In this document: piece by piece, positions 35,691 to 60,790 of the stretch | Numbering within the stretch: the first letter of the stretch is position 1 | Layout: each line of letters starts with the position of its first letter | Virus record (IMG/VR): IMGVR_UViG_3300024336_000005 | Location: 1-64,000 of that record | DNA length: 64,000 bases | Reading direction: 5' to 3' (one strand) | Translations under genes and position numbers: made by a program | The notes under the pieces: generated by a model | The model's database searches: none | Seen by the model: only the letters and a program-made list of their open reading frames with translations | What the model was told of the DNA's origin: nothing

Positions 35691-37640
35691 TTATGGGTTG
35701 ATGTGGGCCGGCAGATAACCTCTGCGCTTCTGCTCTACCAAGAACATGTCTGCCGCACGCTGGCCACCAGGGCCAATGGATTTTTCGTAGTAACGGTCAA
35801 GGATAGCAGCATACGCTGAGGTATCCACTTCTTCTCTTTCAGGTGCTGCGCTATCTTGCTCGGCCCCTAGACCATCAAGCTTCTCGCCATCAGGCTTTCT
35901 AGCCATCCCATTCTCAGGCTCACTTTCAAGATCTGAAAGTGAATCTCTTAGAGACTGGATGCTTCTTGTTGAGAGCTCGGTTAGCTTCTCTGTTCTATCA
36001 GTAACTCTAAGCCCCTTCTTGATCTGCGCATCTACAAGAGTTTCTGCCAACATCTGCTTCTGATCTTTCATCAGCTCGATGTTTGCTGCTTCTAGCTGTG
36101 AGATCTCATCCTTTAGGGATGTGACTCTTAGCTTAAGCATGTCTCTTGTTGCTGTCAGGTCATCAGTCTTAGCAGCCTTTTCTTTGAGGGCAGTTAGCTC
36201 CTCTTCTGAAATTTCTACCTTGTCTGAGACCTTCTCTTCCTCCGCAGCCGCTTCGGGCTCGGGAACTGCAGCGCTATCCGCTTCGGGCTCTTCTGGAGTA
36301 GGAGCTAGCTTGACTAGCTTCTCATCAAGGATCTCAAGTAGAGTGGCCTTGGCGTCAGAATCTTCAACTGTCTCAAGCAGTCCCTTAATGGCTTCGCAGT
36401 GAGCGATGTCCTTAGCAGGGAAAGTCTTGTTAGGACCGATGAAAACACTATCTTCCAAACCAGTCAGCAAGTCACCTGTAAGGCGCGCTGCGTCTGACGG
36501 GAGGAACTTGAGAATCTCCTGGTAGTTGGACTCTGTGTCCTTAGTTAGATCGGCGAAATTCATGGTATTTCCTTGCGAGGAGACTTCCTCACGTTGTTCA
36601 TTTCTTCCAATTACTGCATCGGCCTTTTCCTCTGCGGGATTTTCGGGCGGTACAGAGGGGCTAGACTGTTGATTTTTTGAATCTTCTTGAAGAGCGTCTT
36701 GCTCTTTGCCTTCGCCCTTAGCATTAAGTGAAGTAGGAATCTCTACTTCTGTGGCATCGCTGATTCTATAACCCTTACTTGTTCCATCTTCAGACTTCTT
36801 TACCAGCACATGGCCTGAGAAGATTTGATGTGTCATAAGAGTCTGCAGACCTGAGGATGCATCTGCGAATGATAGGTTCTCTCCGAACTCTAAAATCTGT
36901 GCATGTGGGGCTGCGGGGTTGTTTACTGGAGATACTTCTTCATAGTCGAATCCGAAAGGAACTGCAACGCATTCCTTTCCGTCATAGAAGCGACCTCTAT
37001 CGTGACCGCAGTCCTCGTTACGCCAGTCTACTAGCTCTCCATCTAAAGCGCAAGTGGAACAGTGTGCACCCTTTGGCATAAATGAAGTTGATACTGTTAG
37101 GTATCTTCCATCTAGTACCTTCTGAATTGCATCAGGGTCTGTGATGTTCCACAGTCCCTGGATGTGTCCTACTCCTCTGTAGCCATCTGTGCTGGATAGC
37201 TCCTGAAACAGGGGGACTGATTTGAGGCGGTTTTTCTTTGTGGTCTTTGCGTCCCTGAAGGGCGACATGGCGCTTTGCACTCGAGAGTCAACAAGGATCG
37301 CTTGGTTGGTTGTATCGATATAGCGAACGTCGATTACTCTTCCTATTGGATCCTTGCCCTCATCGTGGTGCTTGAGGACGGGCTTGTTGAATGGGCTGAC
37401 GAAGGATCGCGCCCCTCTAAACATCTCATCTGGCAGATAGATTGCCTTGTTCTTTGTGGTTAGCCCTGAGAAGGTCATTCGGACCTTCGCTCGGAGAGAG
37501 TGTCCTGTCAGTGATACTGAGTCTTTCGTCTCGAGCATCAGTCTCTTTCCGGGCTCTACAGCAATTGGTTCCGCGACCATGTGTGCATAGTCGCTTCTTG
37601 CAATTGGCTTTACCCAGTCTGCAAAACTATTATCGGCCAT
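35691..37640 (-). CDS. Prohead protease fused to an acidic coiled-coil scaffold
   Basis: KPVLKHHD..PIGRV...YLTVSTS...EEVSPVNNPA protease motifs; acidic coiled-coil C-terminus. Confidence 0.85.
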   Translation of the reverse strand: MADNSFADWVKPIARSDYAHMVAEPIAVEPGKRLMLETKDSVSLTGHSLRAKVRMTFSGLTTKNKAIYLPDEMFRGARSFVSPFNKPVLKHHDEGKDPIGRVIDVRYIDTTNQAILVDSRVQSAMSPFRDAKTTKKNRLKSVPLFQELSSTDGYRGVGHIQGLWNITDPDAIQKVLDGRYLTVSTSFMPKGAHCSTCALDGELVDWRNEDCGHDRGRFYDGKECVAVPFGFDYEEVSPVNNPAAPHAQILEFGENLSFADASSGLQTLMTHQIFSGHVLVKKSEDGTSKGYRISDATEVEIPTSLNAKGEGKEQDALQEDSKNQQSSPSVPPENPAEEKADAVIGRNEQREEVSSQGNTMNFADLTKDTESNYQEILKFLPSDAARLTGDLLTGLEDSVFIGPNKTFPAKDIAHCEAIKGLLETVEDSDAKATLLEILDEKLVKLAPTPEEPEADSAAVPEPEAAAEEEKVSDKVEISEEELTALKEKAAKTDDLTATRDMLKLRVTSLKDEISQLEAANIELMKDQKQMLAETLVDAQIKKGLRVTDRTEKLTELSTRSIQSLRDSLSDLESEPENGMARKPDGEKLDGLGAEQDSAAPEREEVDTSAYAAILDRYYEKSIGPGGQRAADMFLVEQKRRGYLPAHINP

Positions 37641-41978: not shown

Positions 41979-42448
41979 TAGACATTGCTCTCAGTGTGCG
42001 TCACCTGCAAGGAGAACTGCGACGTACCTATTGGGGCGGCCTTAGACATTGATACATAGATCCAGAAGGGGTAGTAAATCCTATCAGGGGATCCTACTGC
42101 TCCTAGCTCTGGTACGGTTGAGGTGTCCCCGTTGATCAGGGGAGATGCGAGCGTGGCTAGGGCGTTGCTTGGTGCGGCAGCCCACTCTGCATCGGTCGGC
42201 TTATTGTCTCCAGACAGGAGCTTGATGGAGACTGTCCCATCGACAATGTCCGCGCCAGCGGTAGAGGTTGGCTTAATCTCAATGGCATCATACCACTTTG
42301 CCGCATCGTCATTCCTGAGGAATAGCTTCTTTACGAAGCCCGTTCCTCCTGGACGAATCCCAACTGCTATCGGATCTCCAAAGGTTGTAGCCGTAACCTC
42401 TGTAAATAGGAGAGTAGACTCATCAAGCCTATAGATCTTTACTGCCAT
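41978..42448 (-). CDS. Hypothetical beta-rich virion protein
   Basis: Coupled to the terminase gene. Confidence 0.5.
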   Translation of the reverse strand: MAVKIYRLDESTLLFTEVTATTFGDPIAVGIRPGGTGFVKKLFLRNDDAAKWYDAIEIKPTSTAGADIVDGTVSIKLLSGDNKPTDAEWAAAPSNALATLASPLINGDTSTVPELGAVGSPDRIYYPFWIYVSMSKAAPIGTSQFSLQVTHTESNV

Positions 42449-44412
42449 TATCTTCTGCCTCTAAGTAAGTTTGATCTTCTAATCGGACCACGGCCTCCGG
42501 GCTTTGATCCATTTCTTCTCGCTATCTGTCCTCTTACGTGATCCACTGCTTCCTTTGTTGGCATGGCTCCACCGGAGGTTCGAATGTGAGAAGGAGGTAT
42601 GTAACCCTTATCTGCTTCGGCCATCTCTTCTTTCTTATTGCTCATCGCTAGCTTATGGATAGCTCTAGATCTAGGCCTACTTGATTCAGGTACAGAGCTG
42701 ATTGTATCGCTTCCTGGGTGTCCTGTAAATCTAACAATAGGAATAATCTCAGGATTCCCCATCTTTGTGAACTTCATAGCAAATGCAAAGAGGGCAAGAA
42801 TGAACGCATCAAGGGCGTGGTCCGGCAAATCGTCTGAGACCATCTTGTAGGATGGTCTTCCGTTCATTCCAATCTTGTCGATTACATAACCTCTAAGCTG
42901 CCTCTCCAGGTCTGCGTCATACTTACTTAGCTGTATGTTCATCTCTTCGAAGGCTCTGATTGCATTCTCTACAATGGCAGGCTTTGCATAGACCTTATGC
43001 GTCTGCCCTGTGGTTGGGTGGCGGATTTCAATCTTGCTGCCAAAGTCAATTGCCTCGACAATTGACTCTAGTCTCTTGTCTGCTGTATTGGGAGCTGCTG
43101 CTCTGCCGAACTCATTTAGATATTCGATCTGCATTGAGCCTGCGCCGCGATCAACATAAATTGCGACAGGGTTCCACTTCCTGTTTAGCCTTATGAGCTC
43201 TTGGATAGCCTGATACTGCGTGTTGCCTTCTCTGAAGACCTGCCCCTTATCGACAACCTTCCACTGCTTAAAGTCTGCAGAGGGGTCTACTCCTATCACA
43301 TAGCACTCTGTACCGTTGACTGGGTTCCAGTCAACTCCCATTGCATAGATCCACCCTGGAGTGAATACCTGATCACTGTAGAAGTAGTCTCCGTCATCAA
43401 TGGCCACATCAATATGGCCATGCTGGAATACGCCCTCATTAAGCTCGCCGTACTCAGCAAGAATCTCATGAATGTACTTAACGCCTAAGTTCTCTCTCTT
43501 CTGTTCTATCTCCATGTCCTCATCCCAATTGGGACGACACATAGAAGGATAGTGGAAGGATCTAAACTTGGGGTTTAGGTCCCACTTCCAGAACTGCTCT
43601 CTCGCTCCTGAGGGAGTAGAGGACACGCACATTACTGTGTCCTTGTGCTCTGAGAGGATTGCTACGATAGCAGAGAGGTCGCTTGTGGTTAGGTAGTCGC
43701 CCTCGTCGATAACAATCATATCTGCCGACTGGCCACGAATTGTTTCATTTCCCGATACGAAGCCTCTCATGAAGGATCCGTTGGCTAGCTTAAGAAACCT
43801 TTGGGGTGTCTTAACAAAGCGGTTACCAGGGGAGTCTAATGTGGAGGAGGTCTTGATGAACTCCATAGCGATGCTAAAGATGATGTCCAGCTGTGCGATG
43901 TTAGGAGTGATGACAAGGATTCTATATCCTTCCTCTGTGAACATCCGGTGGAGCATCTTCATTACAAGAGTCCAGGTCTTTCCACTTCGCCGGCCAATCC
44001 TATAGATCTGTCTACGGGCAGTGCATTTAACCATCATCTCCTGATAGTAGATAGACGACGGATCTAGGTCATACCTTTCAACATTCTCACCCGAGGCTCC
44101 CTGAGGGAGCCAAGGGCCTCTTATCTTTGTCTCCATATCAGGGACAGTAATATTGTCCTCAGCCCAGAGCACTGGATCCTTAGTCCTGGCGTAGGTCTCC
44201 ATTCCCCGCTGGCCAAGGGCCTGCTGAATAATAGGGTCTGTAATCTGAACGACATGAGTCATAGGATCTGCTGGGATGCCGTCGCACTTAATCGCGAACT
44301 CACCCTTAGCAACTATGGTCTTGCCGCTCTCCTCATCAATTATATCAGAGGTAGCCTTATTTCTTTGGATGCACATTACACATCCGGGATGGAGATCTTT
44401 AGCTTCTATCAT
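42448..44412 (-). CDS. terL: Terminase large subunit
   Basis: Walker A IGRRSGKT, Walker B MIVIDE, SSTP coupling motif, nuclease motifs MGVDW and DHALDA. Confidence 0.93.
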   Translation of the reverse strand: MIEAKDLHPGCVMCIQRNKATSDIIDEESGKTIVAKGEFAIKCDGIPADPMTHVVQITDPIIQQALGQRGMETYARTKDPVLWAEDNITVPDMETKIRGPWLPQGASGENVERYDLDPSSIYYQEMMVKCTARRQIYRIGRRSGKTWTLVMKMLHRMFTEEGYRILVITPNIAQLDIIFSIAMEFIKTSSTLDSPGNRFVKTPQRFLKLANGSFMRGFVSGNETIRGQSADMIVIDEGDYLTTSDLSAIVAILSEHKDTVMCVSSTPSGAREQFWKWDLNPKFRSFHYPSMCRPNWDEDMEIEQKRENLGVKYIHEILAEYGELNEGVFQHGHIDVAIDDGDYFYSDQVFTPGWIYAMGVDWNPVNGTECYVIGVDPSADFKQWKVVDKGQVFREGNTQYQAIQELIRLNRKWNPVAIYVDRGAGSMQIEYLNEFGRAAAPNTADKRLESIVEAIDFGSKIEIRHPTTGQTHKVYAKPAIVENAIRAFEEMNIQLSKYDADLERQLRGYVIDKIGMNGRPSYKMVSDDLPDHALDAFILALFAFAMKFTKMGNPEIIPIVRFTGHPGSDTISSVPESSRPRSRAIHKLAMSNKKEEMAEADKGYIPPSHIRTSGGAMPTKEAVDHVRGQIARRNGSKPGGRGPIRRSNLLRGRR

Positions 44413-45091: not shown

Positions 45092-45547
45092 CTAGCTCCT
45101 TGAGTTCAATGCAACCATACGATCGAATATAAAGTAGAACTTAGATTCATGTCGTGTGACCCTATCTTGATGACAGGACTTGCATAATGTTATACCATTT
45201 TTTACATCCAAAGTCTTCTCTGGAAATAAATACTTCGGCCTAATGTGATGCACCTCTAGTTTCCCACCAAGGCGTCCACACATTTGACACTGGAAGCAAT
45301 CTCTTTTCAGAATATACTCCCTCCAATCTGCATACCAAGGTGTACCATACAAGGCTTTCGCCTCATCATAGTTTCTTGGAATCTTTCGTAGAGTCGCTGA
45401 AGCTGTCGAAGTCCTTGAGGTCCTTCTCTTCCTGCGAGGCTTCCTTGGAGAAGATTTAACAATCTTCGTACTCCTAGCCTTTCTTTTCTCTCGCTCTCTC
45501 TTCTTCCTCTCGAGCTCCTTTAGCTTCTTCTCTACTGCGTTACTCAT
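45092..45547 (-). CDS. HNH endonuclease with a basic N-terminus
   Basis: RDCFQCQMCG...LEVHHIRP...NGITLCKSCH. Confidence 0.9.
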   Translation of the reverse strand: MSNAVEKKLKELERKKREREKRKARSTKIVKSSPRKPRRKRRTSRTSTASATLRKIPRNYDEAKALYGTPWYADWREYILKRDCFQCQMCGRLGGKLEVHHIRPKYLFPEKTLDVKNGITLCKSCHQDRVTRHESKFYFIFDRMVALNSRS

Positions 45548-46127
45548 ACTTAACATGAGACAAAAACTTCAAATCCTCTGTGGCGGTCGCGTAAGCGATC
45601 ATAGTTCCCTTACTTGCCTTAACAAAAAAGAGTGCGGCCTCCTCCATTGAGGAGTAGTCCTTCTTAAGGCCCCAATTACAGAGCGTCCCGTACCTCTTCT
45701 CCTGATCTTCATTCATGTAGGAAAAGACACAGGTGTTGTGGCCTGACAAATCGCCAAAGGCGTCAACCCACCTAAGGGTCAAAACCTTAACGTCAAAGAC
45801 GCCAGGAACGAACTGAAGCATCTTGGCCGCATAGATGGCAAACTCATCGCAATCAGTCTGAAATTTCAATCCTGTCCTAATCTTTCTTTCTACCCATTCT
45901 GCTGATCTCATCCAGCCGTGCTTAATCTTTAGGCCAAAGGCCTCCACGACGTCCGCAGACCAAACCAGGAGGTTGAGGCGCTGGACTGCCTGGATGACAG
46001 TGCCGTAGCGAGGGACCGGCAGGCCTGGCCAGAGCGTATCGTGGACCTTATTCGCGACCCTGCTAACAAAATAAGTCAACCAAAAGCTAAGCTTGGTCGC
46101 CGACCACCATATGATAATCTTCTTCAT
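45540..46127 (-). CDS. Transglutaminase-like cysteine peptidase
   Basis: TDCDEFA (GDCDDFA-like) plus a downstream GHNTCVF. Confidence 0.55.
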   Translation of the reverse strand: MKKIIIWWSATKLSFWLTYFVSRVANKVHDTLWPGLPVPRYGTVIQAVQRLNLLVWSADVVEAFGLKIKHGWMRSAEWVERKIRTGLKFQTDCDEFAIYAAKMLQFVPGVFDVKVLTLRWVDAFGDLSGHNTCVFSYMNEDQEKRYGTLCNWGLKKDYSSMEEAALFFVKASKGTMIAYATATEDLKFLSHVKYE

Positions 46128-48032: not shown

Positions 48033-51000
48033 TTAATTCCCTATATGGTGTTGAGTCCAATTTTCTGAATTCATCATCCTCTTACTCCAGCCGCGTGCAA
48101 TCCTATTGCCTTCCATAAGGCCTCGCCTTGTGCGCGTGCTGCGCTTCACTGTATTAATAACCCCGTCTATTCGGTATCCAGACCCAAAGTCTCCAATGTT
48201 TGCTTGCCTGTTGGCTTGGGCCCATCCGTGTCTGAGTCCCTCCTGAATTGTGGAATCATCACGTCCTCCCGCAGCCTGCATTGCAGAAAGCTCAGTATCT
48301 GGATTCCGAATTCTGTGGACAATGCTCGAGGCCCTAAAATTTCCAAATAGTCTTTCCAGATCTGTAAACGCATTGTGCGTAATCTTTCTTTTCGCTCCCT
48401 TCTGGATATTGTGAGCCGCGCGCCAACCAGCATCTGACCACATTCCAGTCTCAGATTCGACTGCTTCCTCCTGAGCTCTGTTAAAAGCACGCGCATCGAA
48501 TATTCTGTCTGAAGCCTTTCCAAAAGGTAGACTCGCCGCTGCCCCTTGGCGGACGAGCTGCAAGTTGAGGTTAACATTGTCATCGCCAAACAAAAGAGCG
48601 GGAGTACGACCATATGTAGATCCTGCGTTGGGATCGAAGACGGCAGTCATCGAGCTCTGTGAGGCCATTAGCTCTTCGAGCATCTCCGTTGCTCTCTCAC
48701 CATATGGCTGATCTTGGAATACTTTATTAGATGCATACGCATCACCATGGGAGACCTCGGGAGCATCAATGCCGGCTAGACGTAAGGACATAGTATTCCC
48801 ACCGCTAAGCATAAGCTTTACGGTGTCTGCATCTTCTATCTCATAGTCTGTGACCTTCTGCTGCCCTATCTGACCTTCATACCTCCTGTTCAAAGCATGG
48901 TCTAGCCCCTGCCAAGGGGAACCGAAGTCGGTCTTTTTGCTTCTGGTGGCGTCGGCAACACCCCCTCCGTGAGCCATGCCCTCCTCTGGATTTAGAGCGC
49001 GGTTGGAGCGGACCTGTCTCTCATAGAGAGTGCTAACAACCTGCTTGTCGCGCTTCAGTGCAGCCTCTTCTGATATCGCTCTGATCTGACGGCCGCCGCC
49101 CTCCTTCCTTACGATCTCACCATGACGCTTTCCTTTGCCTGTCCATTGTCCCAATGGACTCCCGTAGTCAATAATGCCAATGCGCTTGGCGCCTCTCTGG
49201 TCCGCAGTTAAGACAATGTTGCCAAAGTTGAGATCTCCATGACGCATCTGCTCGTGTAGTGTTGATACAGCTTCGTTTATGCGACCCAAGCCAACCTCTC
49301 TTAGCTCAGAAGGGGACAGGTCCTTCAAGGGAGACCCTTCAAAGTATTCCATGTCCATCTGTCCCTGGCGACCAGGACGGGCGGCATAAACATCTGGCCC
49401 AACTGAGGAGCTAGCCTTGCTTGTCAAGGCAACCTCTGATTTAGGAATTCTCCCGGCCTTACGAACAAAATTGAATGACTGGCCTCTGAAATAGCCCTCC
49501 ATGAGGTGAGCTTCGCCACTTGCTCCGGCACCAAGCCTCTTTACGCGAGTAGCAAGGGCGATGGCATCTTGGAAGCCAGGAGATCCTGTCATCTCAGCAA
49601 AGGTCTCTGCAGCTCTAGTCAATCCCCTGAGGGCATTCCAGCCAGAACCAAAGTCAGCAGTCTTCTTTCTTGCTGGCCCCTTAAAGCCTTCGTGCCTAAG
49701 TCCTTCGATGACGTTATAGGCATCATCCTTCCCAGAAATCTTTCCTGGCTCTATCTGCATCCCGGGATAATAGCCCTGAAACTTAGACATGCGCTGGTGA
49801 GCACGACCGGCGTCGGACATGTCAAGATATCTAACTTTTCCTGCAACAATATCATCTGCAGCAGCCTGTGTGTGCAATAGCCTCCCAGAGGATGCTTCTA
49901 TGACCGCTTGGTTGGCAGTCATGTCTGTCCCCTTGAAGAATGAGGGAAGGTCCTTTTGTATTTGCACATCAAAGAAGCTTTGATGCTTGGCCATTGCCCC
50001 ATATACCTTATCTAAGCCGATGTCTCCTGTAACAAGAAGGTCAATGTCCTTAGACTGTCTTGTCCATTCGGGACGAAGACTTGACACCAGATGCTCTCTG
50101 GCCACCCCTCCCTTAACATATAGATTGCCCCCCATTCCTGCAATCTCATCTGCCAATGCACCAACGCCAGCAATAGCAGCAGGGTTGTTCGGGTCTGATA
50201 GGCCCGCAGCCTCTGCGTTTGAGAATGCTGCAGATATGCCACCTTCTTCCTTTACAATCTTTGTTGGTCGTCCAATGTGCGACGGGTTATAATCCTCCGT
50301 CGAAACTCCTTTCAGAACTCTTACTTCAACTTCTCCCCTTAACCGGCGCGTTCCGCGCCGCAAGCCCTCAACCTTCTTTTGATGGAAAAAGTCTCTTAGA
50401 ACTCCGGTCGCGGAAAAGCCCTCCAACTCTCTCCTTTCTATGAAATCAGTTCGACTCAGGGTCACGGCGTCAGTCTTTGGATCGTAACTTCTGACAGCGT
50501 GCGGCTTGTCTGCGTGTCCGATTCTCGGCATCCGAAAATCTCTCGGCTTCATATCAGTCCGCAGAATCTTTTTTTCTGTGCTTTCGAATCGGATGCTTTG
50601 GTTACGAGTGTAGAGGTGTGCGCCCTCAGACATATCTAATTTAGAGAGCTCTTTTTCAGGTATAAAGAAGAAGGTGCTATCAGATACAGAGCTGTTTCCA
50701 GTAGCGGAACTTTTCGCGTACGCAGACAGAAGCTCCTCACGGCTCCCCTTTTGCATTCGGCTTCCGTAAACGCCAACACTCCCTGCTTCATTCAAAGCAT
50801 TGGAGCCTCCTGGAAGGAGTCGCTGCGTCTCGAGAATTGAATCGTGGGCGTAATTTGGAGCACCATGAGAGAACCCCGCTCCTAAATCTAAAGTGCTTTT
50901 TGGCGTCCATGTTTTTTCAGGCCCTGCGGCTCGTATATTAATCTTTTCTGCGGCTGCTTCGTATCGTTCAATTTCCGGTCTTGACTTCTTAAAGGCCGCC

Positions 51001-51869
51001 AGATTCTTTCTATAATTCCGCCCCCCTTTGCCCAAGAGCCCCTTTGCCGCCTTTAGCCCAAGACCTATCCCGGCTCCGCCGAGTGCAGCTGTAAGGGACG
51101 GGGTTATACTGCTATAGGCCGCCATTCCGCCGACCGCCGCGCCCCATCCAGCTCCTCCGCTGCCAATATATGAGAAAGCCCTGTCAAGATCTAGGAGGGG
51201 GATCTCTCTCCTTAGTTCTCCATATCCATATTTTTTGGTTCTTGACCAAAGGTCCTTAGCCTTGGTTAAGGCCCCCCTCCAACCAGAACCAAAGTCAGTA
51301 TTGTGCTTACGGGTTTGCCCAGCAAAACCCGCATGCTTCATTCCCTCTATATAGTTATATTCATCATCAGAACCAGAAAAGAGTAGCCCAACGCCAGCAA
51401 TAGCAGCTGCTCCTCCAGCTAGAAGTCTCCAGTTGCTTTTGATCCCACGCATGGCACGTGCGCTAGTGCCCTCTGGAGCCTCCTTAGCGGCTGTTGCAAC
51501 CGAGGCGGTAGGGTTGGATGGATTAGGGGCAGAAGCCCCCACAGAGGGGGCTGTAGGGGCAGCAAGGGCCATATCATCGGGGTGCCATGGCAGACTTGTC
51601 TCAGCGGTTGGAACATGAGGAACATGAGCCCATCCTCCTGGAGCTCTAGGGGCGTATACCTTGTGCTCTGGGGTGCCCCAAGCAGGAGCAGTTCCAGTGG
51701 TCTTATATATACTGTCTAGAACATCCCAAGCGGCCTGACCTCTTGCACCCTTTAGCTCGTCTGCAGAGAGTCCCCCCATGAGCTTAGAGACTCGCTTCGC
51801 ATGAGCGCCCAGATCATTAGAGGCATCCCAATTGGTTTTACCTGCTGCGAAGTCGTCTATGGCTGACAA
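48033..51869 (-). CDS. Multi-domain polyprotein: nucleotidyltransferase + Ser/Thr kinase + SNase nuclease, separated by repeated linkers
   Basis: NTase YVKGGVARE..KDIDLLV..DMTANQ; kinase LGAGASGEA..VRK..MEY..HGDLNFGNI..IIDYG; SNase DADTV..LRLAGIDAPE..QPYG..YGR..LVRQG..GMW; four EGxxH...DFGS repeats. Confidence 0.85.
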   Translation of the reverse strand: MSAIDDFAAGKTNWDASNDLGAHAKRVSKLMGGLSADELKGARGQAAWDVLDSIYKTTGTAPAWGTPEHKVYAPRAPGGWAHVPHVPTAETSLPWHPDDMALAAPTAPSVGASAPNPSNPTASVATAAKEAPEGTSARAMRGIKSNWRLLAGGAAAIAGVGLLFSGSDDEYNYIEGMKHAGFAGQTRKHNTDFGSGWRGALTKAKDLWSRTKKYGYGELRREIPLLDLDRAFSYIGSGGAGWGAAVGGMAAYSSITPSLTAALGGAGIGLGLKAAKGLLGKGGRNYRKNLAAFKKSRPEIERYEAAAEKINIRAAGPEKTWTPKSTLDLGAGFSHGAPNYAHDSILETQRLLPGGSNALNEAGSVGVYGSRMQKGSREELLSAYAKSSATGNSSVSDSTFFFIPEKELSKLDMSEGAHLYTRNQSIRFESTEKKILRTDMKPRDFRMPRIGHADKPHAVRSYDPKTDAVTLSRTDFIERRELEGFSATGVLRDFFHQKKVEGLRRGTRRLRGEVEVRVLKGVSTEDYNPSHIGRPTKIVKEEGGISAAFSNAEAAGLSDPNNPAAIAGVGALADEIAGMGGNLYVKGGVAREHLVSSLRPEWTRQSKDIDLLVTGDIGLDKVYGAMAKHQSFFDVQIQKDLPSFFKGTDMTANQAVIEASSGRLLHTQAAADDIVAGKVRYLDMSDAGRAHQRMSKFQGYYPGMQIEPGKISGKDDAYNVIEGLRHEGFKGPARKKTADFGSGWNALRGLTRAAETFAEMTGSPGFQDAIALATRVKRLGAGASGEAHLMEGYFRGQSFNFVRKAGRIPKSEVALTSKASSSVGPDVYAARPGRQGQMDMEYFEGSPLKDLSPSELREVGLGRINEAVSTLHEQMRHGDLNFGNIVLTADQRGAKRIGIIDYGSPLGQWTGKGKRHGEIVRKEGGGRQIRAISEEAALKRDKQVVSTLYERQVRSNRALNPEEGMAHGGGVADATRSKKTDFGSPWQGLDHALNRRYEGQIGQQKVTDYEIEDADTVKLMLSGGNTMSLRLAGIDAPEVSHGDAYASNKVFQDQPYGERATEMLEELMASQSSMTAVFDPNAGSTYGRTPALLFGDDNVNLNLQLVRQGAAASLPFGKASDRIFDARAFNRAQEEAVESETGMWSDAGWRAAHNIQKGAKRKITHNAFTDLERLFGNFRASSIVHRIRNPDTELSAMQAAGGRDDSTIQEGLRHGWAQANRQANIGDFGSGYRIDGVINTVKRSTRTRRGLMEGNRIARGWSKRMMNSENWTQHHIGN

Positions 51870-51872
51870 GTG

Positions 51873-52733
51873 CTACTCCTTTTCCTCAGTAATCTGTGCC
51901 TGTAGTTGCTTAACTCTCTTCATTAGTTCAGACATGTGCACAGAAGCGTCCTTAACATTCTCACCCTCTCGAGCGGTCATGACTCTTTGTTCTCTTCTGG
52001 TCCCTACTAGTTCCTTACGAAGACGATCCTTCCGCGCCCACAACTTCTCCTTAATCTTCATAAGGTCAGCTACATCCTTTACATAGTTGTCTACAATGTC
52101 TCCCGCCTTAGTAGTTGTAGTACTAACAAGCTTCTCTTCTGTAAGTCCTTGCAGTTCAGGCTCCGACGCAAGCTTTGCGTTGACCCTGCTCTCTAATAGT
52201 TCTATCTCTGCAAGTTCTAGTATGAACCTTTGGTCTGTATACTCTTCCTCTCTTCCGGTCACATCAAACTCTATGGAAAGCTTTTGTACTGCATCATGTA
52301 GGATGTCTGTCTCTATTGGGCATGCCCTTCCTATTGGAACAACCCGACGACTCTCCCCTGATCTATCTATCTCCTCTTGGAGGCTTACATAAGGACAGGT
52401 GCGGGCACGGGGACAAACCTCTGGGCCCCAGCAGGTCATGATCTGCTGTATAGAAGCACCAGTCTTCATACGCTGGTGAGCGGTCCTTAGGCCGCGAGCT
52501 TCTTCAGCTGTGAGTTGAATATCAGTATAGGCGCCAGAGGCAAGCTTCATCCCGTCGAACCAGTTGTGCCTTACAACATCCCCGCCTTCAGTTATCGCTG
52601 TCCCATTAAATGAGACAAGTGCCATCTTATCTCCTTTGGGAACCTTCTCTAGTATAGGGAGCTTCTTAGGAGAAGGCTTCTCTTGGTCTACTATAGGAAG
52701 ACCATCTTCGTATTCTGGGATCCATTCATCCAT
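51873..52733 (-). CDS. Cys-motif + coiled-coil protein (possible terminase small subunit)
   Basis: CWGPEVCPRARTCP..CPIE; helical C-terminus; near the head of the operon containing terL. Confidence 0.35.
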   Translation of the reverse strand: MDEWIPEYEDGLPIVDQEKPSPKKLPILEKVPKGDKMALVSFNGTAITEGGDVVRHNWFDGMKLASGAYTDIQLTAEEARGLRTAHQRMKTGASIQQIMTCWGPEVCPRARTCPYVSLQEEIDRSGESRRVVPIGRACPIETDILHDAVQKLSIEFDVTGREEEYTDQRFILELAEIELLESRVNAKLASEPELQGLTEEKLVSTTTTKAGDIVDNYVKDVADLMKIKEKLWARKDRLRKELVGTRREQRVMTAREGENVKDASVHMSELMKRVKQLQAQITEEKE

Positions 52734-53061: not shown

Positions 53062-53482
53062 CTGTGCGGAGGGATCCTTGCTTTAATTCTTCTAGTTGCG
53101 CGGGTGAGAGATTCATCTCAATGATAGAAGAAGTCTTCTTGTCACCAGACTCTGGCGGGTCTGGTGCTATCCACTTAAAGGCCATGGAGACAAGTGCGGC
53201 GGCGATGAGAGAAGCGACAATAGATATGACCGCCCACTTCCCACTAAAGGTCGCGCCGGTGGTCTCTAGCTCCCTCAACCTCTTCTCTTGATCTACGTCC
53301 TTCGATTCCAATACGTTGACCTTTACTTTTAGTTTGGTCAACTCCTCGGGATGATAGCCTATCATCCTGCCCTTAAGTTCTTGTACGTCCCCGCTTATCT
53401 TTTCATAGTTATCATTTAATCTTTCTAGTTCTTTTAGCACATGGCGGGACCACTCATTCCACCCATTTTGATCATTGCTCAT
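53051..53482 (-). CDS. Coiled-coil + single transmembrane protein (holin/XhlA-like)
   Basis: Coiled coil ending EKRLRELE, then WAVISIVASLIAAALVSMAF. Confidence 0.45.
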   Translation of the reverse strand: MSNDQNGWNEWSRHVLKELERLNDNYEKISGDVQELKGRMIGYHPEELTKLKVKVNVLESKDVDQEKRLRELETTGATFSGKWAVISIVASLIAAALVSMAFKWIAPDPPESGDKKTSSIIEMNLSPAQLEELKQGSLRTVAS

Positions 53483-53946
53483 TGTAGATCTCCCCGCTGT
53501 TTTTTGCTATTAGGGCAAATTTGACAAGGAGAGGGCCAGAGGCGACCAAAGGTATAGGTCTCACTCTCGTCATGCCTGGACCAGCTAGTCCAAAGAACTG
53601 TAACGTACTCCCCTTCTTTAGTCCTCAGCCGATTAGAAGTCACAAAGTACCCCAACTCTTGTGGACTTCTTGCATGCATAACCCTTTCGATTTTTTCCCT
53701 ATCCTCAGGATGAATGATATCGGAGATAGACCTCCCTTTAATTTCACTCTTTGAATACCCCAGTTCACGCAAGGCCCTGGGGTTGCAGTCTTCTATGATC
53801 AAATCGTTGAAGATAAAGATCATGTCAGGACAAGAGTTGTAGAAGTCCTCGAGCTGAGAATTCCTCTTTGCCAACTCATCGTCCCTTCTGTTCAAAGCTA
53901 TCGTTAGCTTCTTCAGTTCGGTCAGTGTTTTCATGATTACATCCAA
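53479..53946 (-). CDS. Stand-alone PAS-domain protein
   Basis: FYNSCPDMIFIF..IEDCNPRALRELGYSKSEIKGRSISDIIHPEDR...NRLRTKEGEY. Confidence 0.85.
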   Translation of the reverse strand: MDVIMKTLTELKKLTIALNRRDDELAKRNSQLEDFYNSCPDMIFIFNDLIIEDCNPRALRELGYSKSEIKGRSISDIIHPEDREKIERVMHARSPQELGYFVTSNRLRTKEGEYVTVLWTSWSRHDESETYTFGRLWPSPCQICPNSKKQRGDLQ

Positions 53947-54113: not shown

Positions 54114-54274
54114 CCTAGTGTAAGTGTTGGGAGTAGTAGGGTACCTATCGGTGCGAGCCCCTACCCCGACGACTTGGATAGCATGTTGCTATCACACTGG
54201 GCATAACGTCCAACAACCAGAGAAGTAGCAGGCATATCGTCTGTCTTCTCTATGCATGACTTAGGAGTTATATC

Positions 54275-55081
54275 ATGCAGTCCATCATCACCTCCATCAT
54301 CGCCCTGTCCGATCACCTGTACCACGCCCTCATCAACGCGATCGACACGCAGGATGCTGTGGCGCGCTGCTACGATGCGATCTGGTACTACCACGCACAG
54401 GTCCGCATCGACAACGGGCACAAGACCGAGACCTTCACCCGTGAGGGTGACAGCGTCATGCGTGAGGTGGTGTACAACGCCTCCATCATGGGCAAGGCCA
54501 GTCGCAAGCTGGCTGTCACCGGTCACGCGCAGGTGCTCATGGATGTGAGCAAGCTGTCCTTCACCCACACCTATGCTCGTGAGCCCCAGGCACACACGAG
54601 TCAGGTGAAGGTCACCATCGTGTACCCTGCGGCCAAGGCTGAGCCCACTGACCTCGAGGTGCGCCTCGCCTACGAGGAGTGGATGAACATCCAGGGCCAC
54701 CTGGAGCCCAAGGAGGAGGCCAAGGCTGAGGCTGATGCTGAGGTGGTGGAGGATGAGCACGTGGTGGAGGACTACTGGTACCTCATGGAGGACTACACCA
54801 AGGAGGATGCCCTCCACCTGGAGCGCAGCACGATGGGCAAGGACCGTAAGGCGTGGGATAGGCCCAACCGGGTGCTGGAGGTGGCCATGGAGGCACAGGC
54901 CAAGGCCCGTGAGGAGGAGGCAGAGGCCCTGTACCAGAGGGAGATGGCTGAGGCCAAGGCCCTCTGGGAGGCCAAGGTTGAGCTCTTCAAGAAGGTGAAG
55001 GGTGGCATGCCCAAGTACCCCCGAACCCACTATGGTAAGCCCATGCCTCGGGCCTACTGGAAGGAGGTGTTCGGGGGCTAG
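54275..55081 (+). CDS. Hypothetical early protein
   Basis: AGGAG RBS, strong GC3 bias. Confidence 0.8.
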   Translation: MQSIITSIIALSDHLYHALINAIDTQDAVARCYDAIWYYHAQVRIDNGHKTETFTREGDSVMREVVYNASIMGKASRKLAVTGHAQVLMDVSKLSFTHTYAREPQAHTSQVKVTIVYPAAKAEPTDLEVRLAYEEWMNIQGHLEPKEEAKAEADAEVVEDEHVVEDYWYLMEDYTKEDALHLERSTMGKDRKAWDRPNRVLEVAMEAQAKAREEEAEALYQREMAEAKALWEAKVELFKKVKGGMPKYPRTHYGKPMPRAYWKEVFGG

Positions 55082-55311
55082 GTAGCATAGGTATGGTGAC
55101 CCCTCTTCGGAGGGGGCTCCATATGGGTACATGTGGGGTGTATGGTGTATGCCATATGCTACTACGTGTACCCATATGGGGTACTGTATAGGTAGTAGGG
55201 TATAGCCCTGCTACTGGTACCACTGGGCATACCACATGGGGTGGTGTGCTATAGCAGGGGGGTGTATAGCCCGAGCCCCCCTCTGTGTATAGTAGGGCAT
55301 AGGGGTACTAT
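55082..55311 (+). other. Highly structured intergenic region
   Basis: CCCCTC-TTCG-GAGGGG; long stem CCATATGGGTAC..GTACCCATATGG; GTAGTAGGG..CCCTGCTAC. Confidence 0.55.
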
Positions 55312-55515
55312 ATGTACGTCATCAAGACCGAGTGGGCCCGCTACGTGCGAGGGACGTTGAGGGACGTTGAGGTGCGCCTCAGCGTCGTGACCCACGAGGA
55401 GGCCAAGCGGCTTCTCCGCACTGAGGTCCCCCTCGTGGGGAGGTCCCTCCAGGGGATCTCCTCCCATGTGGGGGACCGACTGAGCGTCCCCACCTGGACG
55501 CTGGTCAGCGAGTAA
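55312..55515 (+). CDS. Hypothetical early protein
   Basis: GC3 bias; AGGGG RBS. Confidence 0.65.
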   Translation: MYVIKTEWARYVRGTLRDVEVRLSVVTHEEAKRLLRTEVPLVGRSLQGISSHVGDRLSVPTWTLVSE

Positions 55516-55615
55516 GGTGATGGGGCACACGACTGTCGTGAGACAGCCGTGTGTTTAAACCACAGGACCGGTCCAAAGTCCGGTCCAAGCAGCCCCAAGG
55601 GGCATAGGAGTAGTC

Positions 55616-55801
55616 ATGATTGATTCCACCAAGCGGGTCACCCTCGATGAGGTGTTGGAGTTGTCGGGTGTGGAGGACCAGAGGGTCTTCGCCTGGGAGC
55701 AGTGGGTCGTCAAGGGCAAGGGGGTCCAGGTGACCCTGGACGTCGACTTCGACGAGAAGACCCACAAGTACAAGGAGATCCACATCTTCATCGGGCGTTA
55801 G
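55616..55801 (+). CDS. Hypothetical early protein
   Basis: AGGAG RBS, GC3 bias. Confidence 0.75.
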   Translation: MIDSTKRVTLDEVLELSGVEDQRVFAWEQWVVKGKGVQVTLDVDFDEKTHKYKEIHIFIGR

Positions 55802-55810
55802 CGCCCGATG

Positions 55811-55951
55811 AGCCCTTCCCCACCGGGCTAAAGGTGGGTGTTCCACATAGGCGCATCAGGGGTAACACCTTGGATGCGTCTTATATGGGGCATAGGCACA
55901 TGTTGTGCCACCCCTTGGTGCAGGTACGCACCATACACGCCCTATTGGGCA
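55811..55951 (+). ncRNA. Structured element family 2, copy 1 (pseudoknot plus conserved stems)
   Basis: Shares its architecture and 20-nt/16-nt blocks with 56270-56406. Confidence 0.55.
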
Positions 55952-55971
55952 CATTAGATAGGAGCTCACCC

Positions 55972-56247
55972 ATGAGCAAGTCCAACGTCGGCAACGAGAG
56001 CCAGTTCATCAACTTCGTTAATGGTTTGTGCGCGGGAAGCCTGTTGCAGTTCGCCATCATCGGCCTCCACACGGCCGCCTGGAAGAAGGACCAGCTGGGG
56101 ACTGCCAGGCTCCGGCAGTTGGGCCAGTACCACGATGACACCACCAGCCGGTTGATCCTCTCCAACGGCGTCGTCGTGGACGTGGATTGGGGCTTCCAAA
56201 AGGGGCAGTCCGCCCATCGCCTCTGGTGGCGCGTGCGCTCTAACTAG
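55972..56247 (+). CDS. Hypothetical early protein (start MSKSN)
   Basis: AGGAG RBS; the codon bias begins here rather than at 55702. Confidence 0.7.
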   Translation: MSKSNVGNESQFINFVNGLCAGSLLQFAIIGLHTAAWKKDQLGTARLRQLGQYHDDTTSRLILSNGVVVDVDWGFQKGQSAHRLWWRVRSN

Positions 56248-56269
56248 AGCAGCGCAGGCCGCCTGAATA

Positions 56270-56406
56270 AGCCCTCTCCCCCGTCGGGCTACAATAGACG
56301 GGGGATCACATGAGGACATCAGGGGTAGCACCTTGGCGTTCTGATGTGGTTTCTAGGGACATGCCGTCCCCATTGGGCAGTTTCGCCCATCACGCCCTAT
56401 TGGGCA
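56270..56406 (+). ncRNA. Structured element family 2, copy 2
   Basis: Covarying pseudoknot and conserved blocks. Confidence 0.55.
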
Positions 56407-56424
56407 TACATGAAAGGCCATACC

Positions 56425-57012
56425 ATGGCTACCTTCATTCGTTCCTCCCTCCTCCTCGCCCTCCTGTTCATCTGTGCCGGTTGCGGCACCAACCCGATGG
56501 CCTTCGGGCCGTTGGGGTGTTTCGTTTTCTCGTTCATCTTCCTCTTGGCGGGGCTGATGCCCACTAAGGCGGTGATCAAGGACGACGACGAGGAGACCGA
56601 GACGATGTCCTCCCCTGAGTGGGAGGTCCAGGAGTTCCCCGCTCTGGAGATCAAGGGGGAGGTGTGCTGGCCCGAGTGGCTGGAGATCTGCGAGGAGGCC
56701 TGGACCGAGCAGGCCAAGGCTGATGAGAACGCCCGTTTGGCGGCGTGGATCGAGCAGAGCAAGGCCACCATCAGGACCCGACAGGCCGAGTCCAAGCGGA
56801 TCGGCAACTGGATTGAGCAGCAGCGCATCAAGCGGTGGGTCGCGGCCCAGGAGGAGAAGGCCGCCAAGAAGGCGTGGAAGGACGCTGAGTACGCCCGCCG
56901 CTGCAAGGCGGCGCGTCAGGCCTGCGTGCTCGCCGAGCAGGAGGCGCAGGATGAACCCCTCCTGGAAGAGAGGATCGAGGAGTTCCGAAAGGAGATCCTC
57001 TCCTCCCTCTAG
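56425..57012 (+). CDS. Membrane protein with a lipoprotein-like/TM N-terminus and coiled-coil C-terminus (start MATFIR)
   Basis: GAAAGG RBS; LLLALLFICAGC and a second hydrophobic stretch. Confidence 0.7.
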   Translation: MATFIRSSLLLALLFICAGCGTNPMAFGPLGCFVFSFIFLLAGLMPTKAVIKDDDEETETMSSPEWEVQEFPALEIKGEVCWPEWLEICEEAWTEQAKADENARLAAWIEQSKATIRTRQAESKRIGNWIEQQRIKRWVAAQEEKAAKKAWKDAEYARRCKAARQACVLAEQEAQDEPLLEERIEEFRKEILSSL

Positions 57013-57147
57013 TTTAGAATCACGATTCGATAGTCGTCCTGAGAGCTGGGACGTTAAACTGCTCACATTAGCAGCAACCCATGGTGGGAAGCTGCTTAAC
57101 TGGGGTAGCCAATCCCCAAGCCCCGTGATGGGGTAAAGGAGTATACC

Positions 57148-58197
57148 GTGAAGAACATTGCCAAGAAGATTGGTTTCGTCTTGGGTGCCGCGATCGGCAT
57201 CATCATGTTGGCCGTGATCGCGAAGTTCGTGCTGGGCATCGTCCAGCACCTGGTCACCATGGCCCTCCTGGCCGGACCCCTCCTGTTCGCCTTCCCCGCC
57301 GCTCGGCGGCGGGTGTTGGTGCTGCTGAACAAGAAGGGCCAGAAGCTCAAGGAGGCCATCGAGGGGACGCCCGCCTGGAAGGGGCGGCAGGGCGTCAAGG
57401 ACGCCATCCAGGCGGGGCTTGAGAAGCAGTGGGAGTCGTTCAAGTCGGCCGCCAAGGCCGACGTGGAGGGGGAGGAGACCCAGGAGTTGTGCGACGGGTG
57501 CGGGAACATCCCGTTCTCCTGCTCCTGCGCGACGATGTCGCCGGAAGATGTGGCTGAGGCCGTCTGGCAGATGGAGGGGGAGCCTGCGCCCTGGCAGCCC
57601 ACCCTAATCGAGGGTGGGCTGGGGGAGGCCGTGGAGCTGTGCCCGGTCTTCGGGGTGGCCAAGCACTCGTGCGCCGGTTGTGACAACGGGCAGCACGAGG
57701 ACCCCAACTTCGTGGACGAGATGGTGGATGATGACGGCATCCCCGCACCGAAGGACGGTCAAGTGGCGTGCTCCACCTGTGGGTGGCCCCATGGGCCGAA
57801 TGGGTGTCGCAACTGTGACGACCCCATCTGCCTTGGCCGGGACGATGATATGTACGAGTACTGCGGCGGGTGTGGCGAGACTTTCGAGAGCTGCCACTGT
57901 TGTGGCGAGCATGAGGCGGTGAAGGTGGAGGTCAAGGTGGAGGAGAGGCAGTGCTCCTGTTGTGCCATCGAGGGCAACGCGAGGACGGAGGCGTACTGTT
58001 GGTTCCACTCCGAGCAGGAGCGGGAGGGGGCGCTCCTGTCGGTGGCGGAGGCCGAGGAGTTGGCCATCTGCGTGAAGGCCGCGCAGGACGCCGTGCGACT
58101 CCTGGACGACCGCTTGGAGTGGGCCGCCAAGGCCCACGCAGGGACCGACTTCGACGCCTGGTGGGCCTGCCGTCAGGGTTGGAAGGGGGAGAAGTGA
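57148..58197 (+). CDS. Membrane-anchored Cys-rich (multi zinc-finger-like) protein
   Basis: Two N-terminal TM segments; CDGC..CSC, CSTC..CRNC, CGGC..CHCC and other Cys clusters. Confidence 0.75.
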   Translation: MKNIAKKIGFVLGAAIGIIMLAVIAKFVLGIVQHLVTMALLAGPLLFAFPAARRRVLVLLNKKGQKLKEAIEGTPAWKGRQGVKDAIQAGLEKQWESFKSAAKADVEGEETQELCDGCGNIPFSCSCATMSPEDVAEAVWQMEGEPAPWQPTLIEGGLGEAVELCPVFGVAKHSCAGCDNGQHEDPNFVDEMVDDDGIPAPKDGQVACSTCGWPHGPNGCRNCDDPICLGRDDDMYEYCGGCGETFESCHCCGEHEAVKVEVKVEERQCSCCAIEGNARTEAYCWFHSEQEREGALLSVAEAEELAICVKAAQDAVRLLDDRLEWAAKAHAGTDFDAWWACRQGWKGEK

Positions 58198-59649: not shown

Positions 59650-59658
59650 TCTTCTCTC

Positions 59659-60783: not shown

Positions 60784-60790
60784 TAGTATT

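Follow-up and report, generated by a model that had tools for sequence, protein, structure and literature searches.

We found that an uncultured giant phage encodes, next to its DNA-packaging genes, a 1278-residue string of predicted enzyme domains (nucleotidyltransferase, protein-kinase-like and nuclease), each preceded by the same motif of about 37 residues. Related phages exchange modules, and in the one exchange resolved at the DNA level the swap occurred at this motif, which suggests a general way of equipping virions with varied host-attack enzymes. The gene lies on the minus strand of the 64,000-nt stretch of viral DNA analysed here (hereafter, the window), and the phage appears to be a myovirus of about 200 kb. 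The starting point was a sequence-only reading, which described four copies of a ~35-aa repeat bracketing a poly(A)-polymerase/CCA-type nucleotidyltransferase preceded by an unknown domain, a Ser/Thr kinase and a thermonuclease. This observation proved correct, the repeat coordinates agreeing with ours to within a few bases.

Repeats and domains of the protein

The ORF is uninterrupted and begins with a TTG codon 4 nt after the stop codon of the upstream ORF. Public gene callers use the same start, as the corresponding public protein (P0001) matches with 100% identity and coverage. Pairwise local alignment scores of the four repeats are 59-126 (40 for repeat 3 against repeat 4), compared with 33 +/- 4 for shuffled protein. 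HMM scores are 45-71 bits per copy, and no other copy occurs in any reading frame of the window. The consensus of the repeat is FSGxDDxYNTIEGLxHxGxAxxxRKxxTDFGSGWxG. No Pfam, NCBIfam or PHROG model covers the motif, and we found no paper in which it is printed.

The nuclease module matches the staphylococcal nuclease family (Pfam PF00565) with E=3e-14 and 53.7 bits against a cut-off of 21, and a Foldseek comparison gave a TM score of 0.66 to the OB-fold structures of staphylococcal nuclease. The D-x-D-T, R...D-x-x-E and Y-G-R motifs, which correspond to the Ca-site and catalytic residues of the family, are present. The kinase-like module of the window protein alone scores below the Pfam cut-off (13-14 bits), but some relatives exceed it (for example, 35.4 against 31.7 for Pkinase in the homologue P0037). 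Moreover, a profile of the module hits 1603 kinase sequences in the PDB, the best with E=4e-13. Of the features expected of the protein-kinase-like superfamily (Gly-rich loop, VAIK Lys, alphaC Glu, HxD...N catalytic loop and DFG-type Asp), the residues listed in Table 1 are invariant in 6 modules.

For the first cargo, the AF2 model is confident only over the nucleotidyltransferase. Its 25 best Foldseek matches in the PDB are all CCA-adding or A-adding enzymes, or unnamed entries grouped with them (probability 0.97-1.0, E down to 1.5e-4), and the G-G...D-x-D motif of the Pol-beta head domain is invariant. On the other hand, neither Pfam (PolyA_pol) nor PDB sequence searches returned a match, and the confident domain spans only ~155 aa and is followed directly by repeat 2; the tRNA-binding neck, body and tail domains of these enzymes were not recognized. 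The part of this cargo upstream of the transferase (aa 201-554) is unidentified.

Table 1. Features of the repeat-containing protein and of its genomic surroundings (window coordinates).
Position	Strand	Residues (aa)	Feature
48033..51869	-	1-1278	Whole ORF: repeat-punctuated multi-enzyme (polyvalent) protein
51426..51869	-	1-148	N-terminal region of unknown function; relatives carry here a 280-560-aa DEDDh (DnaQ-like) exonuclease module, which this protein lacks
51369..51425	-	149-167	Gly/Ala-rich hydrophobic (glycine-zipper-like) segment running into repeat 1; the same feature precedes the first repeat in most relatives
51270..51380	-	164-200	Repeat 1 (leader motif), 71 bits
51033..51137	-	245-279	Second Gly/Ala-rich hydrophobic stretch
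50520..50912	-	320-450	Conserved but unidentified part of cargo 1 with an H...LxPG..N...GxGVYFS...T.N pattern; AF2 confidence is low, and the resemblance to ADP-ribosyltransferases is only a lead
49740..50207	-	555-710	Predicted class-II CCA-adding / poly(A)-polymerase-type nucleotidyltransferase head domain; G587-G588...D608-x-D610
49629..49739	-	711-747	Repeat 2, 57 bits
49017..49628	-	748-951	Protein-kinase-like module with a short C-lobe; conserved K804, E812, D879, N884, D901-Y-G903
48903..49016	-	952-989	Repeat 3, the degenerate 'FGSPWQGL' subtype that precedes nuclease modules
48276..48902	-	990-1198	Staphylococcal-nuclease (thermonuclease) module; Pfam core aa 1029-1146; DADT (1013), IDAPE (1034) and YGR (1086)
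48165..48275	-	1199-1235	Repeat 4, the 'GDFGSGY' subtype that always precedes the short basic tail
48036..48164	-		43-aa basic C-terminal tail (module cluster c5), shared by 22 relatives and ending ...HH.G
51873..52733	-		Upstream gene, homologue of 0305phi8-36 gp112 and ME3 gp009; directly upstream of the repeat protein in every relative inspected
42448..44412	-		Large terminase subunit, six genes downstream in the same tightly packed transcription direction
35691..37640	-		Homologue of 0305phi8-36 gp123 (annotated prohead protease/scaffold), directly after the portal gene; candidate trans-acting processing enzyme

A large viral family with variable modules

The motif defines a large family. 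We identified 589 representative proteins (clusters at 50% identity) at E<=1e-3 and 117 at E<=1e-30, and each of the 150 best has 2-7 copies of the motif. The median distance between repeats is 236 aa, about the size of one domain. In those 150 proteins together with the first homologue set (161 proteins in total) there are 141 module clusters and 147 distinct architectures. More than 100 module clusters have no Pfam name, and the order of shared modules is shuffled. In addition to the modules described above, relatives feature a DEDDh exonuclease, a J-domain and DUF2441. Whether the cargo varies between relatives had been put forward in advance as a test of modularity, and it does. A DNA pattern for the motif matched 41 IMG/VR viral contigs of up to 229 kb and none of 185,579 cellular species genomes.

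A pair of ~98%-identical phages, L009 and L010, shows such an exchange directly. The two are 97.9% identical up to the last codon of repeat 1, then carry an unrelated segment of 1029 nt versus 677 nt, and are 98.3% identical again from the TDFGSGW codons of repeat 2. Both breakpoints lie at the DFGSGW-coding end of a repeat. Across the family, repeat positions 1-10 co-vary with the upstream module and positions 34-36 with the downstream one, which points the same way. The upstream genes of the swapped pair are the same, and no immunity-like variable neighbor was seen, although little sequence downstream of the gene was included for L010.

The motif is conserved as a peptide rather than as DNA. 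The repeats are only ~70% identical at the DNA level, synonymous codons differ, and Ser even switches between TCN and AGY. In contrast, across 505 copies from very divergent phages, 12 or more residues are conserved at >=80%, and N9, G13, G18, R24, F30, G31 and S32 at 94-99%. The motif also heads single-module proteins. Stand-alone kinases of 261-357 aa begin with it at residues 2-16 (P0162, P0163, P0165 and P0166 start with the motif), and one of them has a GGAGG ribosome-binding site before its ATG. For P0162 and P0163 we checked the start site and the context; in these smaller relatives a kinase of 266-271 aa occupies the same slot, between the gp112-like gene and the terminase. The motif is therefore a module leader and not a linker. 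None of the three repeats modelled has a confident fold (pLDDT 24-42), whereas the flanking domains reach 60-87. This fits a linear recognition motif, but the AF2 alignments were shallow (3 and 8 rows), making it weak evidence.

The position of the gene is constant. In all 8 neighborhoods inspected, and in 32 of 32 IMG/VR loci long enough to show it, a terminase homolog lies downstream on the same strand, a few genes away. The slot belongs to the head and packaging operon of a clade distantly related to Bacillus phage 0305phi8-36. The region 35694-37640 of the window matches gp123 of that phage with E=3e-22. It has no Pfam, PHROG or PDB match of its own, so that its assignment as a protease rests on the annotation of the 0305phi8-36 record.

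Proposed role and alternative explanations

Taken together, these results suggest, if only tentatively, that the gene encodes a polyvalent effector loaded into the virion, a chain of independent modules each introduced by the leader. Our analysis establishes that modules are exchanged, added, lost and reordered between related phages, that the one exchange seen at the DNA level has both breakpoints at the leader, with family-wide co-variation in agreement, that the leader is conserved as a peptide and also heads single-module proteins, and that the gene is a fixed member of the head and packaging operon. The rest is inference from sequence alone, including virion location, cleavage and any host-takeover or anti-defence activity. 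In this view, the protein would be made late and loaded into the prohead, and the leader would be the common handle by which any module is recognized, either to dock in the prohead or to be cut from its neighbors, most likely by the prohead protease of the phage. The modules would be delivered with the DNA into the next host, where they would attack or reprogram it before phage genes are expressed. Because every leader encodes nearly the same peptide, its DNA would offer short homologies at which in-frame crossovers swap whole modules. The model is consistent with the annotation of virion proteins in the equivalent slot of 0305phi8-36 and with two precedents, namely polyvalent proteins encoded beside virion genes, packaged and processed (PMC5512222), and prohead-protease trimming of ejected head proteins in SPN3US (PMC10052503). 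However, there are also difficulties. A tblastn search of 50,697 phage genomes gave no hit, so that no cultured phage carries the gene and virion location and cleavage are purely inferred. No peptidase family was found in the window protein or in 67 relatives scanned with Pfam, and the N-terminal modules are exonucleases. A conserved motif of 37 aa is far longer than known prohead-protease sites, which are 3 residues in SPN3US. An active non-specific nuclease stored next to the phage genome would need to be kept inactive, and the Gly/Ala-rich hydrophobic segments suggest membrane insertion, which the model does not explain.

The interpretation offered by the sequence-only reading, a swappable cassette of host-takeover or anti-defence enzymes whose repeat is a packaging signal, a prohead-protease site and/or a recombination anchor, is thus partly supported. 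The modularity and the recombination anchor have direct support. The packaging signal or protease site has only indirect support, from the N-terminal position of the motif in stand-alone kinases in the same slot, from the head operon and from the protease/scaffold homolog. The specific proposal of cleavage after Glu (xE|G), as by T4- and phiKZ-type proteases, is weak. Glu12 is only 80% conserved, and the candidate protease is related to 0305phi8-36 gp123, likened by its annotators to HK97 gp4 and P2 gpO rather than to the T4 or phiKZ type.

Other explanations seem less likely. The protein might not be packaged at all, but act late in the producing cell, possibly anchored in the membrane, for example in host nucleic-acid breakdown or exclusion of superinfecting phages, with the repeats as flexible connectors or regulatory segments. 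Nuclease, exonuclease and nucleotidyltransferase modules would suit nucleic-acid turnover, hydrophobic Gly/Ala-rich segments precede many repeats, and direct evidence of packaging is lacking. Yet the motif is kept intact at the very N-terminus of single-module kinases, where it connects nothing, the position within the head and terminase operon does not vary among the loci examined, and connectors are not normally conserved at 94-99% per residue over 505 copies. We consider this reading unlikely. Somewhat less likely still, the protein might be delivered whole and the repeats cut only in the new host, by a host protease or by self-cleavage around the near-invariant Asn9 or at Phe-Gly-Ser, or the repeats might bind a host factor. 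The absence of a detectable cis peptidase domain, the conserved N, R and FGS residues, which could form a reactive or recognition site, and the predicted lack of structure would be compatible with this idea. However, no known self-cleaving element resembles the motif, no family library or paper matches it, and the hosts of such diverse phages would need a common protease or partner.

An ejection or pilot protein, whose glycine-zipper segments insert into the host membrane to help DNA entry, with the repeats as membrane-proximal elements and the enzymes as passengers, appears doubtful. Such segments do occur before repeat 1 and at aa 245-279, as well as on both sides of repeats in relatives, and the homologue P0039 has a weak Pfam glycine-zipper hit. 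Repeats 2-4 of the window protein and the leaders of stand-alone kinases, however, have no hydrophobic neighbor, and contractile-tail phages are not known to need such conduits. Least likely is the possibility that the repeat is solely a DNA-level recombination anchor. The breakpoints coincide with the repeat, and repeats 1 and 2 share 16 identical nucleotides, but saturated synonymous change alongside the conserved peptide, and the retention of the motif in genes with only one copy, argue against it.

A bolder version of the packaging model, which we regard as less likely than not on present evidence, is that the motif is a universal address-and-cut tag of a jumbo-phage clade. Any protein carrying it would be loaded into the prohead and released as a separate unit, and the phage population could assemble and reshuffle its injected enzyme arsenal by simple in-frame crossovers at the tag. 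Together with the conserved C-terminal NGGK(G/R)H-type tail, this would be a natural, programmable cargo-loading system for large capsids. If the leader does direct loading and release of cargo, it would explain how giant phages diversify what they inject, and so how they counter host defences, and it would provide a short portable tag for packaging chosen proteins into large capsids. The more than 100 unannotated module types, all presumably acting on the host in the first moments of infection, make the family a concentrated source of candidate anti-defence and takeover enzymes, and the tRNA-type nucleotidyltransferase, the truncated kinase and the nuclease are amenable to ordinary biochemical tests.

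Relationship to known systems

The closest counterparts are the polyvalent proteins of phages and conjugative elements (Iyer, Burroughs, Anand, de Souza and Aravind 2017, PMC5512222). These likewise combine many unrelated enzymatic domains in one polypeptide, including protein kinases, Pol-beta-superfamily nucleotidyltransferases and nucleases, and are encoded among late and virion genes. Delivery with the DNA and processing into separate units have been proposed for them, and stand-alone versions of the kinase domain and cassette-like variation were noted. Here, no metallopeptidase (MPTase) or other peptidase domain was found. Instead, every module is preceded by one conserved motif, the family is confined to an uncultured jumbo-myovirus clade, and its gene has a fixed place beside the terminase.

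In polymorphic toxin systems (CdiA VENN, Rhs PxxxxDPxGL), a short conserved peptide also marks the border of a variable module, cassettes are exchanged at its coding sequence, and in Rhs the motif is the cleavage site as well. Those systems are bacterial and carry one variable C-terminal toxin plus an adjacent immunity gene, whereas the proteins described here have up to seven boundaries, exchange internal modules and belong to a lytic-type phage. The leader also recalls the capsid-targeting sequences of T4 internal proteins and the propeptides of phiKZ/SPN3US ejection proteins (PMC10052503), where an N-terminal leader directs cargo into the prohead and is removed by the prohead protease, the cargo then being ejected into the host. 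The present motif, for which targeting and cleavage are only inferred, has 37 aa with about 12 near-invariant positions, against roughly ten residues in T4 or a 3-residue cleavage motif in SPN3US, and is reiterated inside one polypeptide.

The nearest cultured phages are Bacillus phage 0305phi8-36, Acinetobacter phage ME3 and Moorella phage MTATph1. None of them has the repeat or the kinase, but their terminase, portal, protease/scaffold and major head protein are homologous (27-32% identity) and in the same order, and the gp112-like and gp115-like neighbors are shared. In 0305phi8-36 the slot is occupied by the small virion proteins gp113 and gp114, the proteins in this slot having been found in virions by mass spectrometry according to the annotation of the record.

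The polyprotein and its predicted cargoes

The 1278-residue reading frame is open throughout, begins with a TTG 4 nt after the stop of the preceding ORF, and the public protein collection holds the identical product (P0001). The sequence-only reading had described four copies of a short motif in this frame, and this observation holds: four copies of a ~37-aa motif are present and match the ranges it gave. Pairwise local alignment scores between the copies are 59-126 (40 for the weakest pair), compared with 33 +/- 4 for shuffled sequence, and a profile scores the copies at 45-71 bits each, while finding nothing else in the six-frame translation of the 64-kb window. Pfam, PHROG and NCBIfam have nothing over the repeats, and no paper was found that contains the motif strings.

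Coordinates of the polyprotein, its parts and other features of the window
Feature	Window position	Strand	Residues	Remark
Polyprotein ORF	48033-51869	-	1-1278	TTG start
Repeat 1	51270-51380	-	164-200
Repeat 2	49629-49739	-	711-747
Repeat 3	48903-49016	-	952-989
Repeat 4	48165-48275	-	1199-1235
First cargo			201-710
Conserved, unidentified part of first cargo	50520-50912	-	320-450
Predicted nucleotidyltransferase head domain			555-710	pLDDT 74-83
Conserved kinase positions			K804, E812, D879, N884, D901, G903
Staphylococcal-nuclease domain			1029-1146	Pfam match
Basic C-terminal tail	48036-48164		43 aa	ends HH.G
Direct repeat, 20 nt, first copy	51388-51407		155-161	encodes AAIAGVG, hydrophobic segment before repeat 1
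Direct repeat, 20 nt, second copy	50161-50180		564-570	encodes AAIAGVG, start of nucleotidyltransferase domain
Large terminase	42451-44412
Portal	37633-39702
Homologue of 0305phi8-36 gp123	35694-37640			annotated protease/scaffold in 0305phi8-36
Major head protein	33123-34484
HNH endonuclease	45092-45556			two genes before the terminase
PAS-domain protein	53482-53946	-	155 aa	PAS_3, E=3.5e-11
High-GC block	54200-64000
Cys-rich protein	57148-58197	+
Lys/Glu/Ala-rich coiled-coil protein	58669-59649	+		short tandem repeats
Long ORF, likely compositional artefact	61068-63920	-
Three consecutive giant ORFs	2111-17468	-	2025, 1823 and 1270 aa	probably tail or baseplate

The nuclease cargo is a staphylococcal-nuclease (SNase) domain, with a Pfam score of 53.7 bits against a cut-off of 21, a Foldseek TM of 0.66 and the D-A-D-T, I-D-A-P-E and Y-G-R motifs in place. 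On its own the kinase copy in this protein is below Pfam cut-offs. The Foldseek list for the second structural model was filled with SNase variants, so the kinase fold was checked by profile search instead. A profile of six homologous modules hits 1603 PDB kinase sequences, the best with E=4e-13 to a small Ser/Thr kinase, NCBIfam's best kinase match is Bud32, and relatives pass Pfam cut-offs. The Lys, Glu, HxD...N and D-x-G positions are invariant. Only ~50 residues follow the D-Y-G motif, so the C-lobe is short; kinases of polyvalent proteins that have lost the C-terminal subdomain have been described by Iyer et al. (PMC5512222).

For the first cargo, the AF2 model is confident only over its last part. 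The 25 best PDB matches of that model are all class-II CCA-adding or A-adding enzymes, or unnamed entries that group with them (probability 0.97-1.0), and the G-G...D-x-D motif is invariant in three homologues. It is therefore a bare head domain without tRNA-binding domains. The remainder of this cargo (aa 201-554) was left unresolved by AF2, and a PDB sequence search with the first cargo found nothing useful. It holds two Gly/Ala-rich hydrophobic stretches and a conserved region that could not be identified. In that region the pattern H-x-T ... L-x-P-G-x-x-N ... G-x-G-V-Y-F-S ... T-x-N is shared by the six members of the module cluster and is reminiscent of H-Y-E-type ADP-ribosyltransferases, but with low AF2 confidence and no profile hit this resemblance could not be confirmed, and we do not claim it. 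A perfect 20-nt direct repeat links the hydrophobic segment before repeat 1 with the start of the nucleotidyltransferase domain. A chance match of this length within 3.8 kb is very unlikely, and the repeat may be a footprint of an earlier module junction.

The repeat family and exchange of modules

A whole-protein search gave 32 homologues of 816-1895 aa on contigs up to ~205 kb, all of which carry the motif and in which the shared modules come in different orders. A profile of 20 repeat copies, searched against 1.84 billion representative proteins, found 589 proteins at E<=1e-3, 362 at <=1e-10 and 117 at <=1e-30; the best 150 are 580-2454 aa long with 2-7 copies each. We cut 161 proteins at their 505 repeats, obtaining modules with a median length of 236 aa that fall into 141 clusters and 147 distinct architectures. 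The kinase is the commonest module (120 copies), followed by an N-terminal module (clusters c1 and c3, 106 copies) and SNase (54). We looked for a cis-acting protease among the N-terminal modules of relatives, but these instead open with the FDIETTGL / N..F(D/E) / H.A..D signature of DEDDh exonucleases, and some match Pfam RNase_T; the window protein lacks this module, and the window encodes no such module anywhere. A Pfam census of 43 further members names only kinase, SNase, exonuclease, J-domain and an intein, whereas most modules are unannotated. Some relatives (P0019, P0033, P0036, P0038, P0052, P0054, P0063 and P0090) have two repeats only 33-37 residues apart, which could be empty cassettes or very small modules.

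To examine the distribution of the motif at the DNA level, we used a hand-made degenerate pattern, which matches both strong repeats in the window and 7 of 8 related metagenome loci. It finds 0 matches in one genome for each of 185,579 bacterial and archaeal species, and 43 stretches on 41 IMG/VR viral contigs up to 229 kb. In all 32 of those loci that extend far enough, a terminase homologue lies downstream on the same strand.

Evidence for cassette exchange at the repeat comes from two homologues, P0008 and P0009, encoded by two phages whose DNA is 97.9% identical from 3 kb upstream of the gene to the last codon of repeat 1. An unrelated stretch follows, 1029 nt in one and 677 nt in the other, and identity returns to 98.3% from the T-D-F-G-S-G-W codons of repeat 2 to the end. 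Both junctions therefore sit at the conserved C-terminal end of a repeat, and the swapped unit is one module plus the first three-quarters of the following repeat. Across all 505 repeats, positions 1-10 share more information with the upstream module, while positions 34-36 share more with the downstream module. Another pair of homologues, P0010 and P0014, differ by the insertion of one module in the same way.

The motif as a peptide leader and its inferred role

Within the window the copies are only ~70% identical as DNA, on which grounds we reject a recent DNA duplication as the origin of the repeat; the longest shared run is 16 nt, and between phages the same residues use different codons. 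In the logo of 505 copies, N9, G13, G18, R24, F30, G31 and S32 are 94-99% conserved, S2, G3, I11, E12, T28 and G33 are 80-86% conserved, and H16 is 73%, with Glu in 21%. AF2 gives no confident structure for repeats 2-4 (pLDDT 24-42), while the neighbouring domains fold, although the alignment was shallow and this is weak evidence.

A search for shorter proteins with repeat 2, the kinase and repeat 3 as the query found kinases of 261-357 aa that begin with the motif at residues 2-16. Two of them, in loci L054 and L055, occupy exactly the slot of the polyprotein: the gene order is a gp112-like gene, then the kinase with an overlapping TAATG junction, then a gp115-like gene, then terminase. In L054 a GGAGG lies before the start, and the motif occurs nowhere else in those two loci. 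The minimal form of the gene is thus leader + kinase, and longer forms add further leader + module units, so that the motif is a leader rather than a linker. A second shared element, ...A..N-G-G-K-(G/R)-H..., lies 10-30 residues from the C-terminus behind many different last modules (family proteins P0033-P0161 and P0162-P0166). A loose pattern for it matches 83 of 170 proteins, and one His is nearly invariant in a 43-protein alignment. The window protein instead has the alternative basic tail shared by 22 relatives.

Taken together, the analysis establishes the modular architecture, exchange at the motif, conservation at the peptide level, the leader position, the fixed place of the gene in the head and packaging operon and the restriction to viral contigs. 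Beyond this, we infer that the protein is made late and taken into the prohead, that the leader is what the assembly machinery recognises, for docking and/or for cutting, and that the modules are ejected into the next host. Since no peptidase domain occurs in cis, the gp123-like protease would be the obvious candidate for the cutting enzyme. This is the logic of polyvalent proteins (PMC5512222) and of T4 and SPN3US head cargo (PMC10052503), the difference being that one reiterated 37-aa leader replaces the MPTase domain and the short cleavage motif. The interpretation put forward in the sequence-only reading is partly supported: exchange at the repeat is borne out, but the proposed 'xE|G' protease site is not favoured, because Glu12 varies more than seven other positions. 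The loading and processing model as a whole remains tentative, at somewhat less than even likelihood in our judgement, and the protein might alternatively be an unpackaged late enzyme, be cleaved or bound only in the new host, or act as a membrane-inserting pilot protein, or the repeat might be a purely DNA-level anchor. Polyvalent or polymorphic cassette proteins are already known as a kind. What is new is the motif, its reiteration before every module, the scale of the family and the base-level swap, none of which appears in the libraries or papers that we could search.

Genome context

The window is a novel phage. Its nearest cultured relatives are Moorella phage MTATph1, Acinetobacter phage ME3 and Bacillus phage 0305phi8-36, all with 177-235-kb genomes, at 27-32% protein identity. 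A tblastn search with the whole polyprotein and a megablast search with 24 kb around it gave no match in 50,697 phage genomes, and only terminase and major head protein find distant relatives. The ORF after the portal matches 0305phi8-36 gp123, annotated protease/scaffold (E=3e-22), although this candidate has no Pfam, PHROG or PDB match of its own. The ORF directly upstream of the polyprotein matches gp112. In 0305phi8-36 the slot between gp112 and the terminase holds gp113, gp114 and gp116, which the record lists as virion proteins found by mass spectrometry.

Genes from about 53946 down past the terminase are tightly spaced or overlapping on one strand, and promoter and terminator scans were at chance level. 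Near the start of this leftward block lies a PAS-domain protein; a sensor-type domain is unusual at the head of a phage structural gene block. To the right of it, G+C rises from ~50% to 58-65%, and both GC and AT skew turn positive, exactly where transcription switches to the + strand. This high-GC block is not host DNA by any test that we could run, and it has no Pfam hits. The plausible + strand ORFs, among them the coiled-coil and Cys-rich proteins, have no Pfam match, while long minus-strand ORFs there look like artefacts of the composition.

In relatives, inteins and homing endonucleases (Hint/LAGLIDADG, GIY-YIG, HNH) interrupt or flank the gp112-like gene, the terminase and the portal (related loci L001, 8266-9981 and 20885-23272; L054, 10083-13052; L002, 22284 onward), and the window itself has an HNH endonuclease close to the terminase. 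At the distal end of the structural block lie three consecutive giant ORFs, which by position and by comparison with ME3 gp035-037 are probably tail or baseplate proteins.
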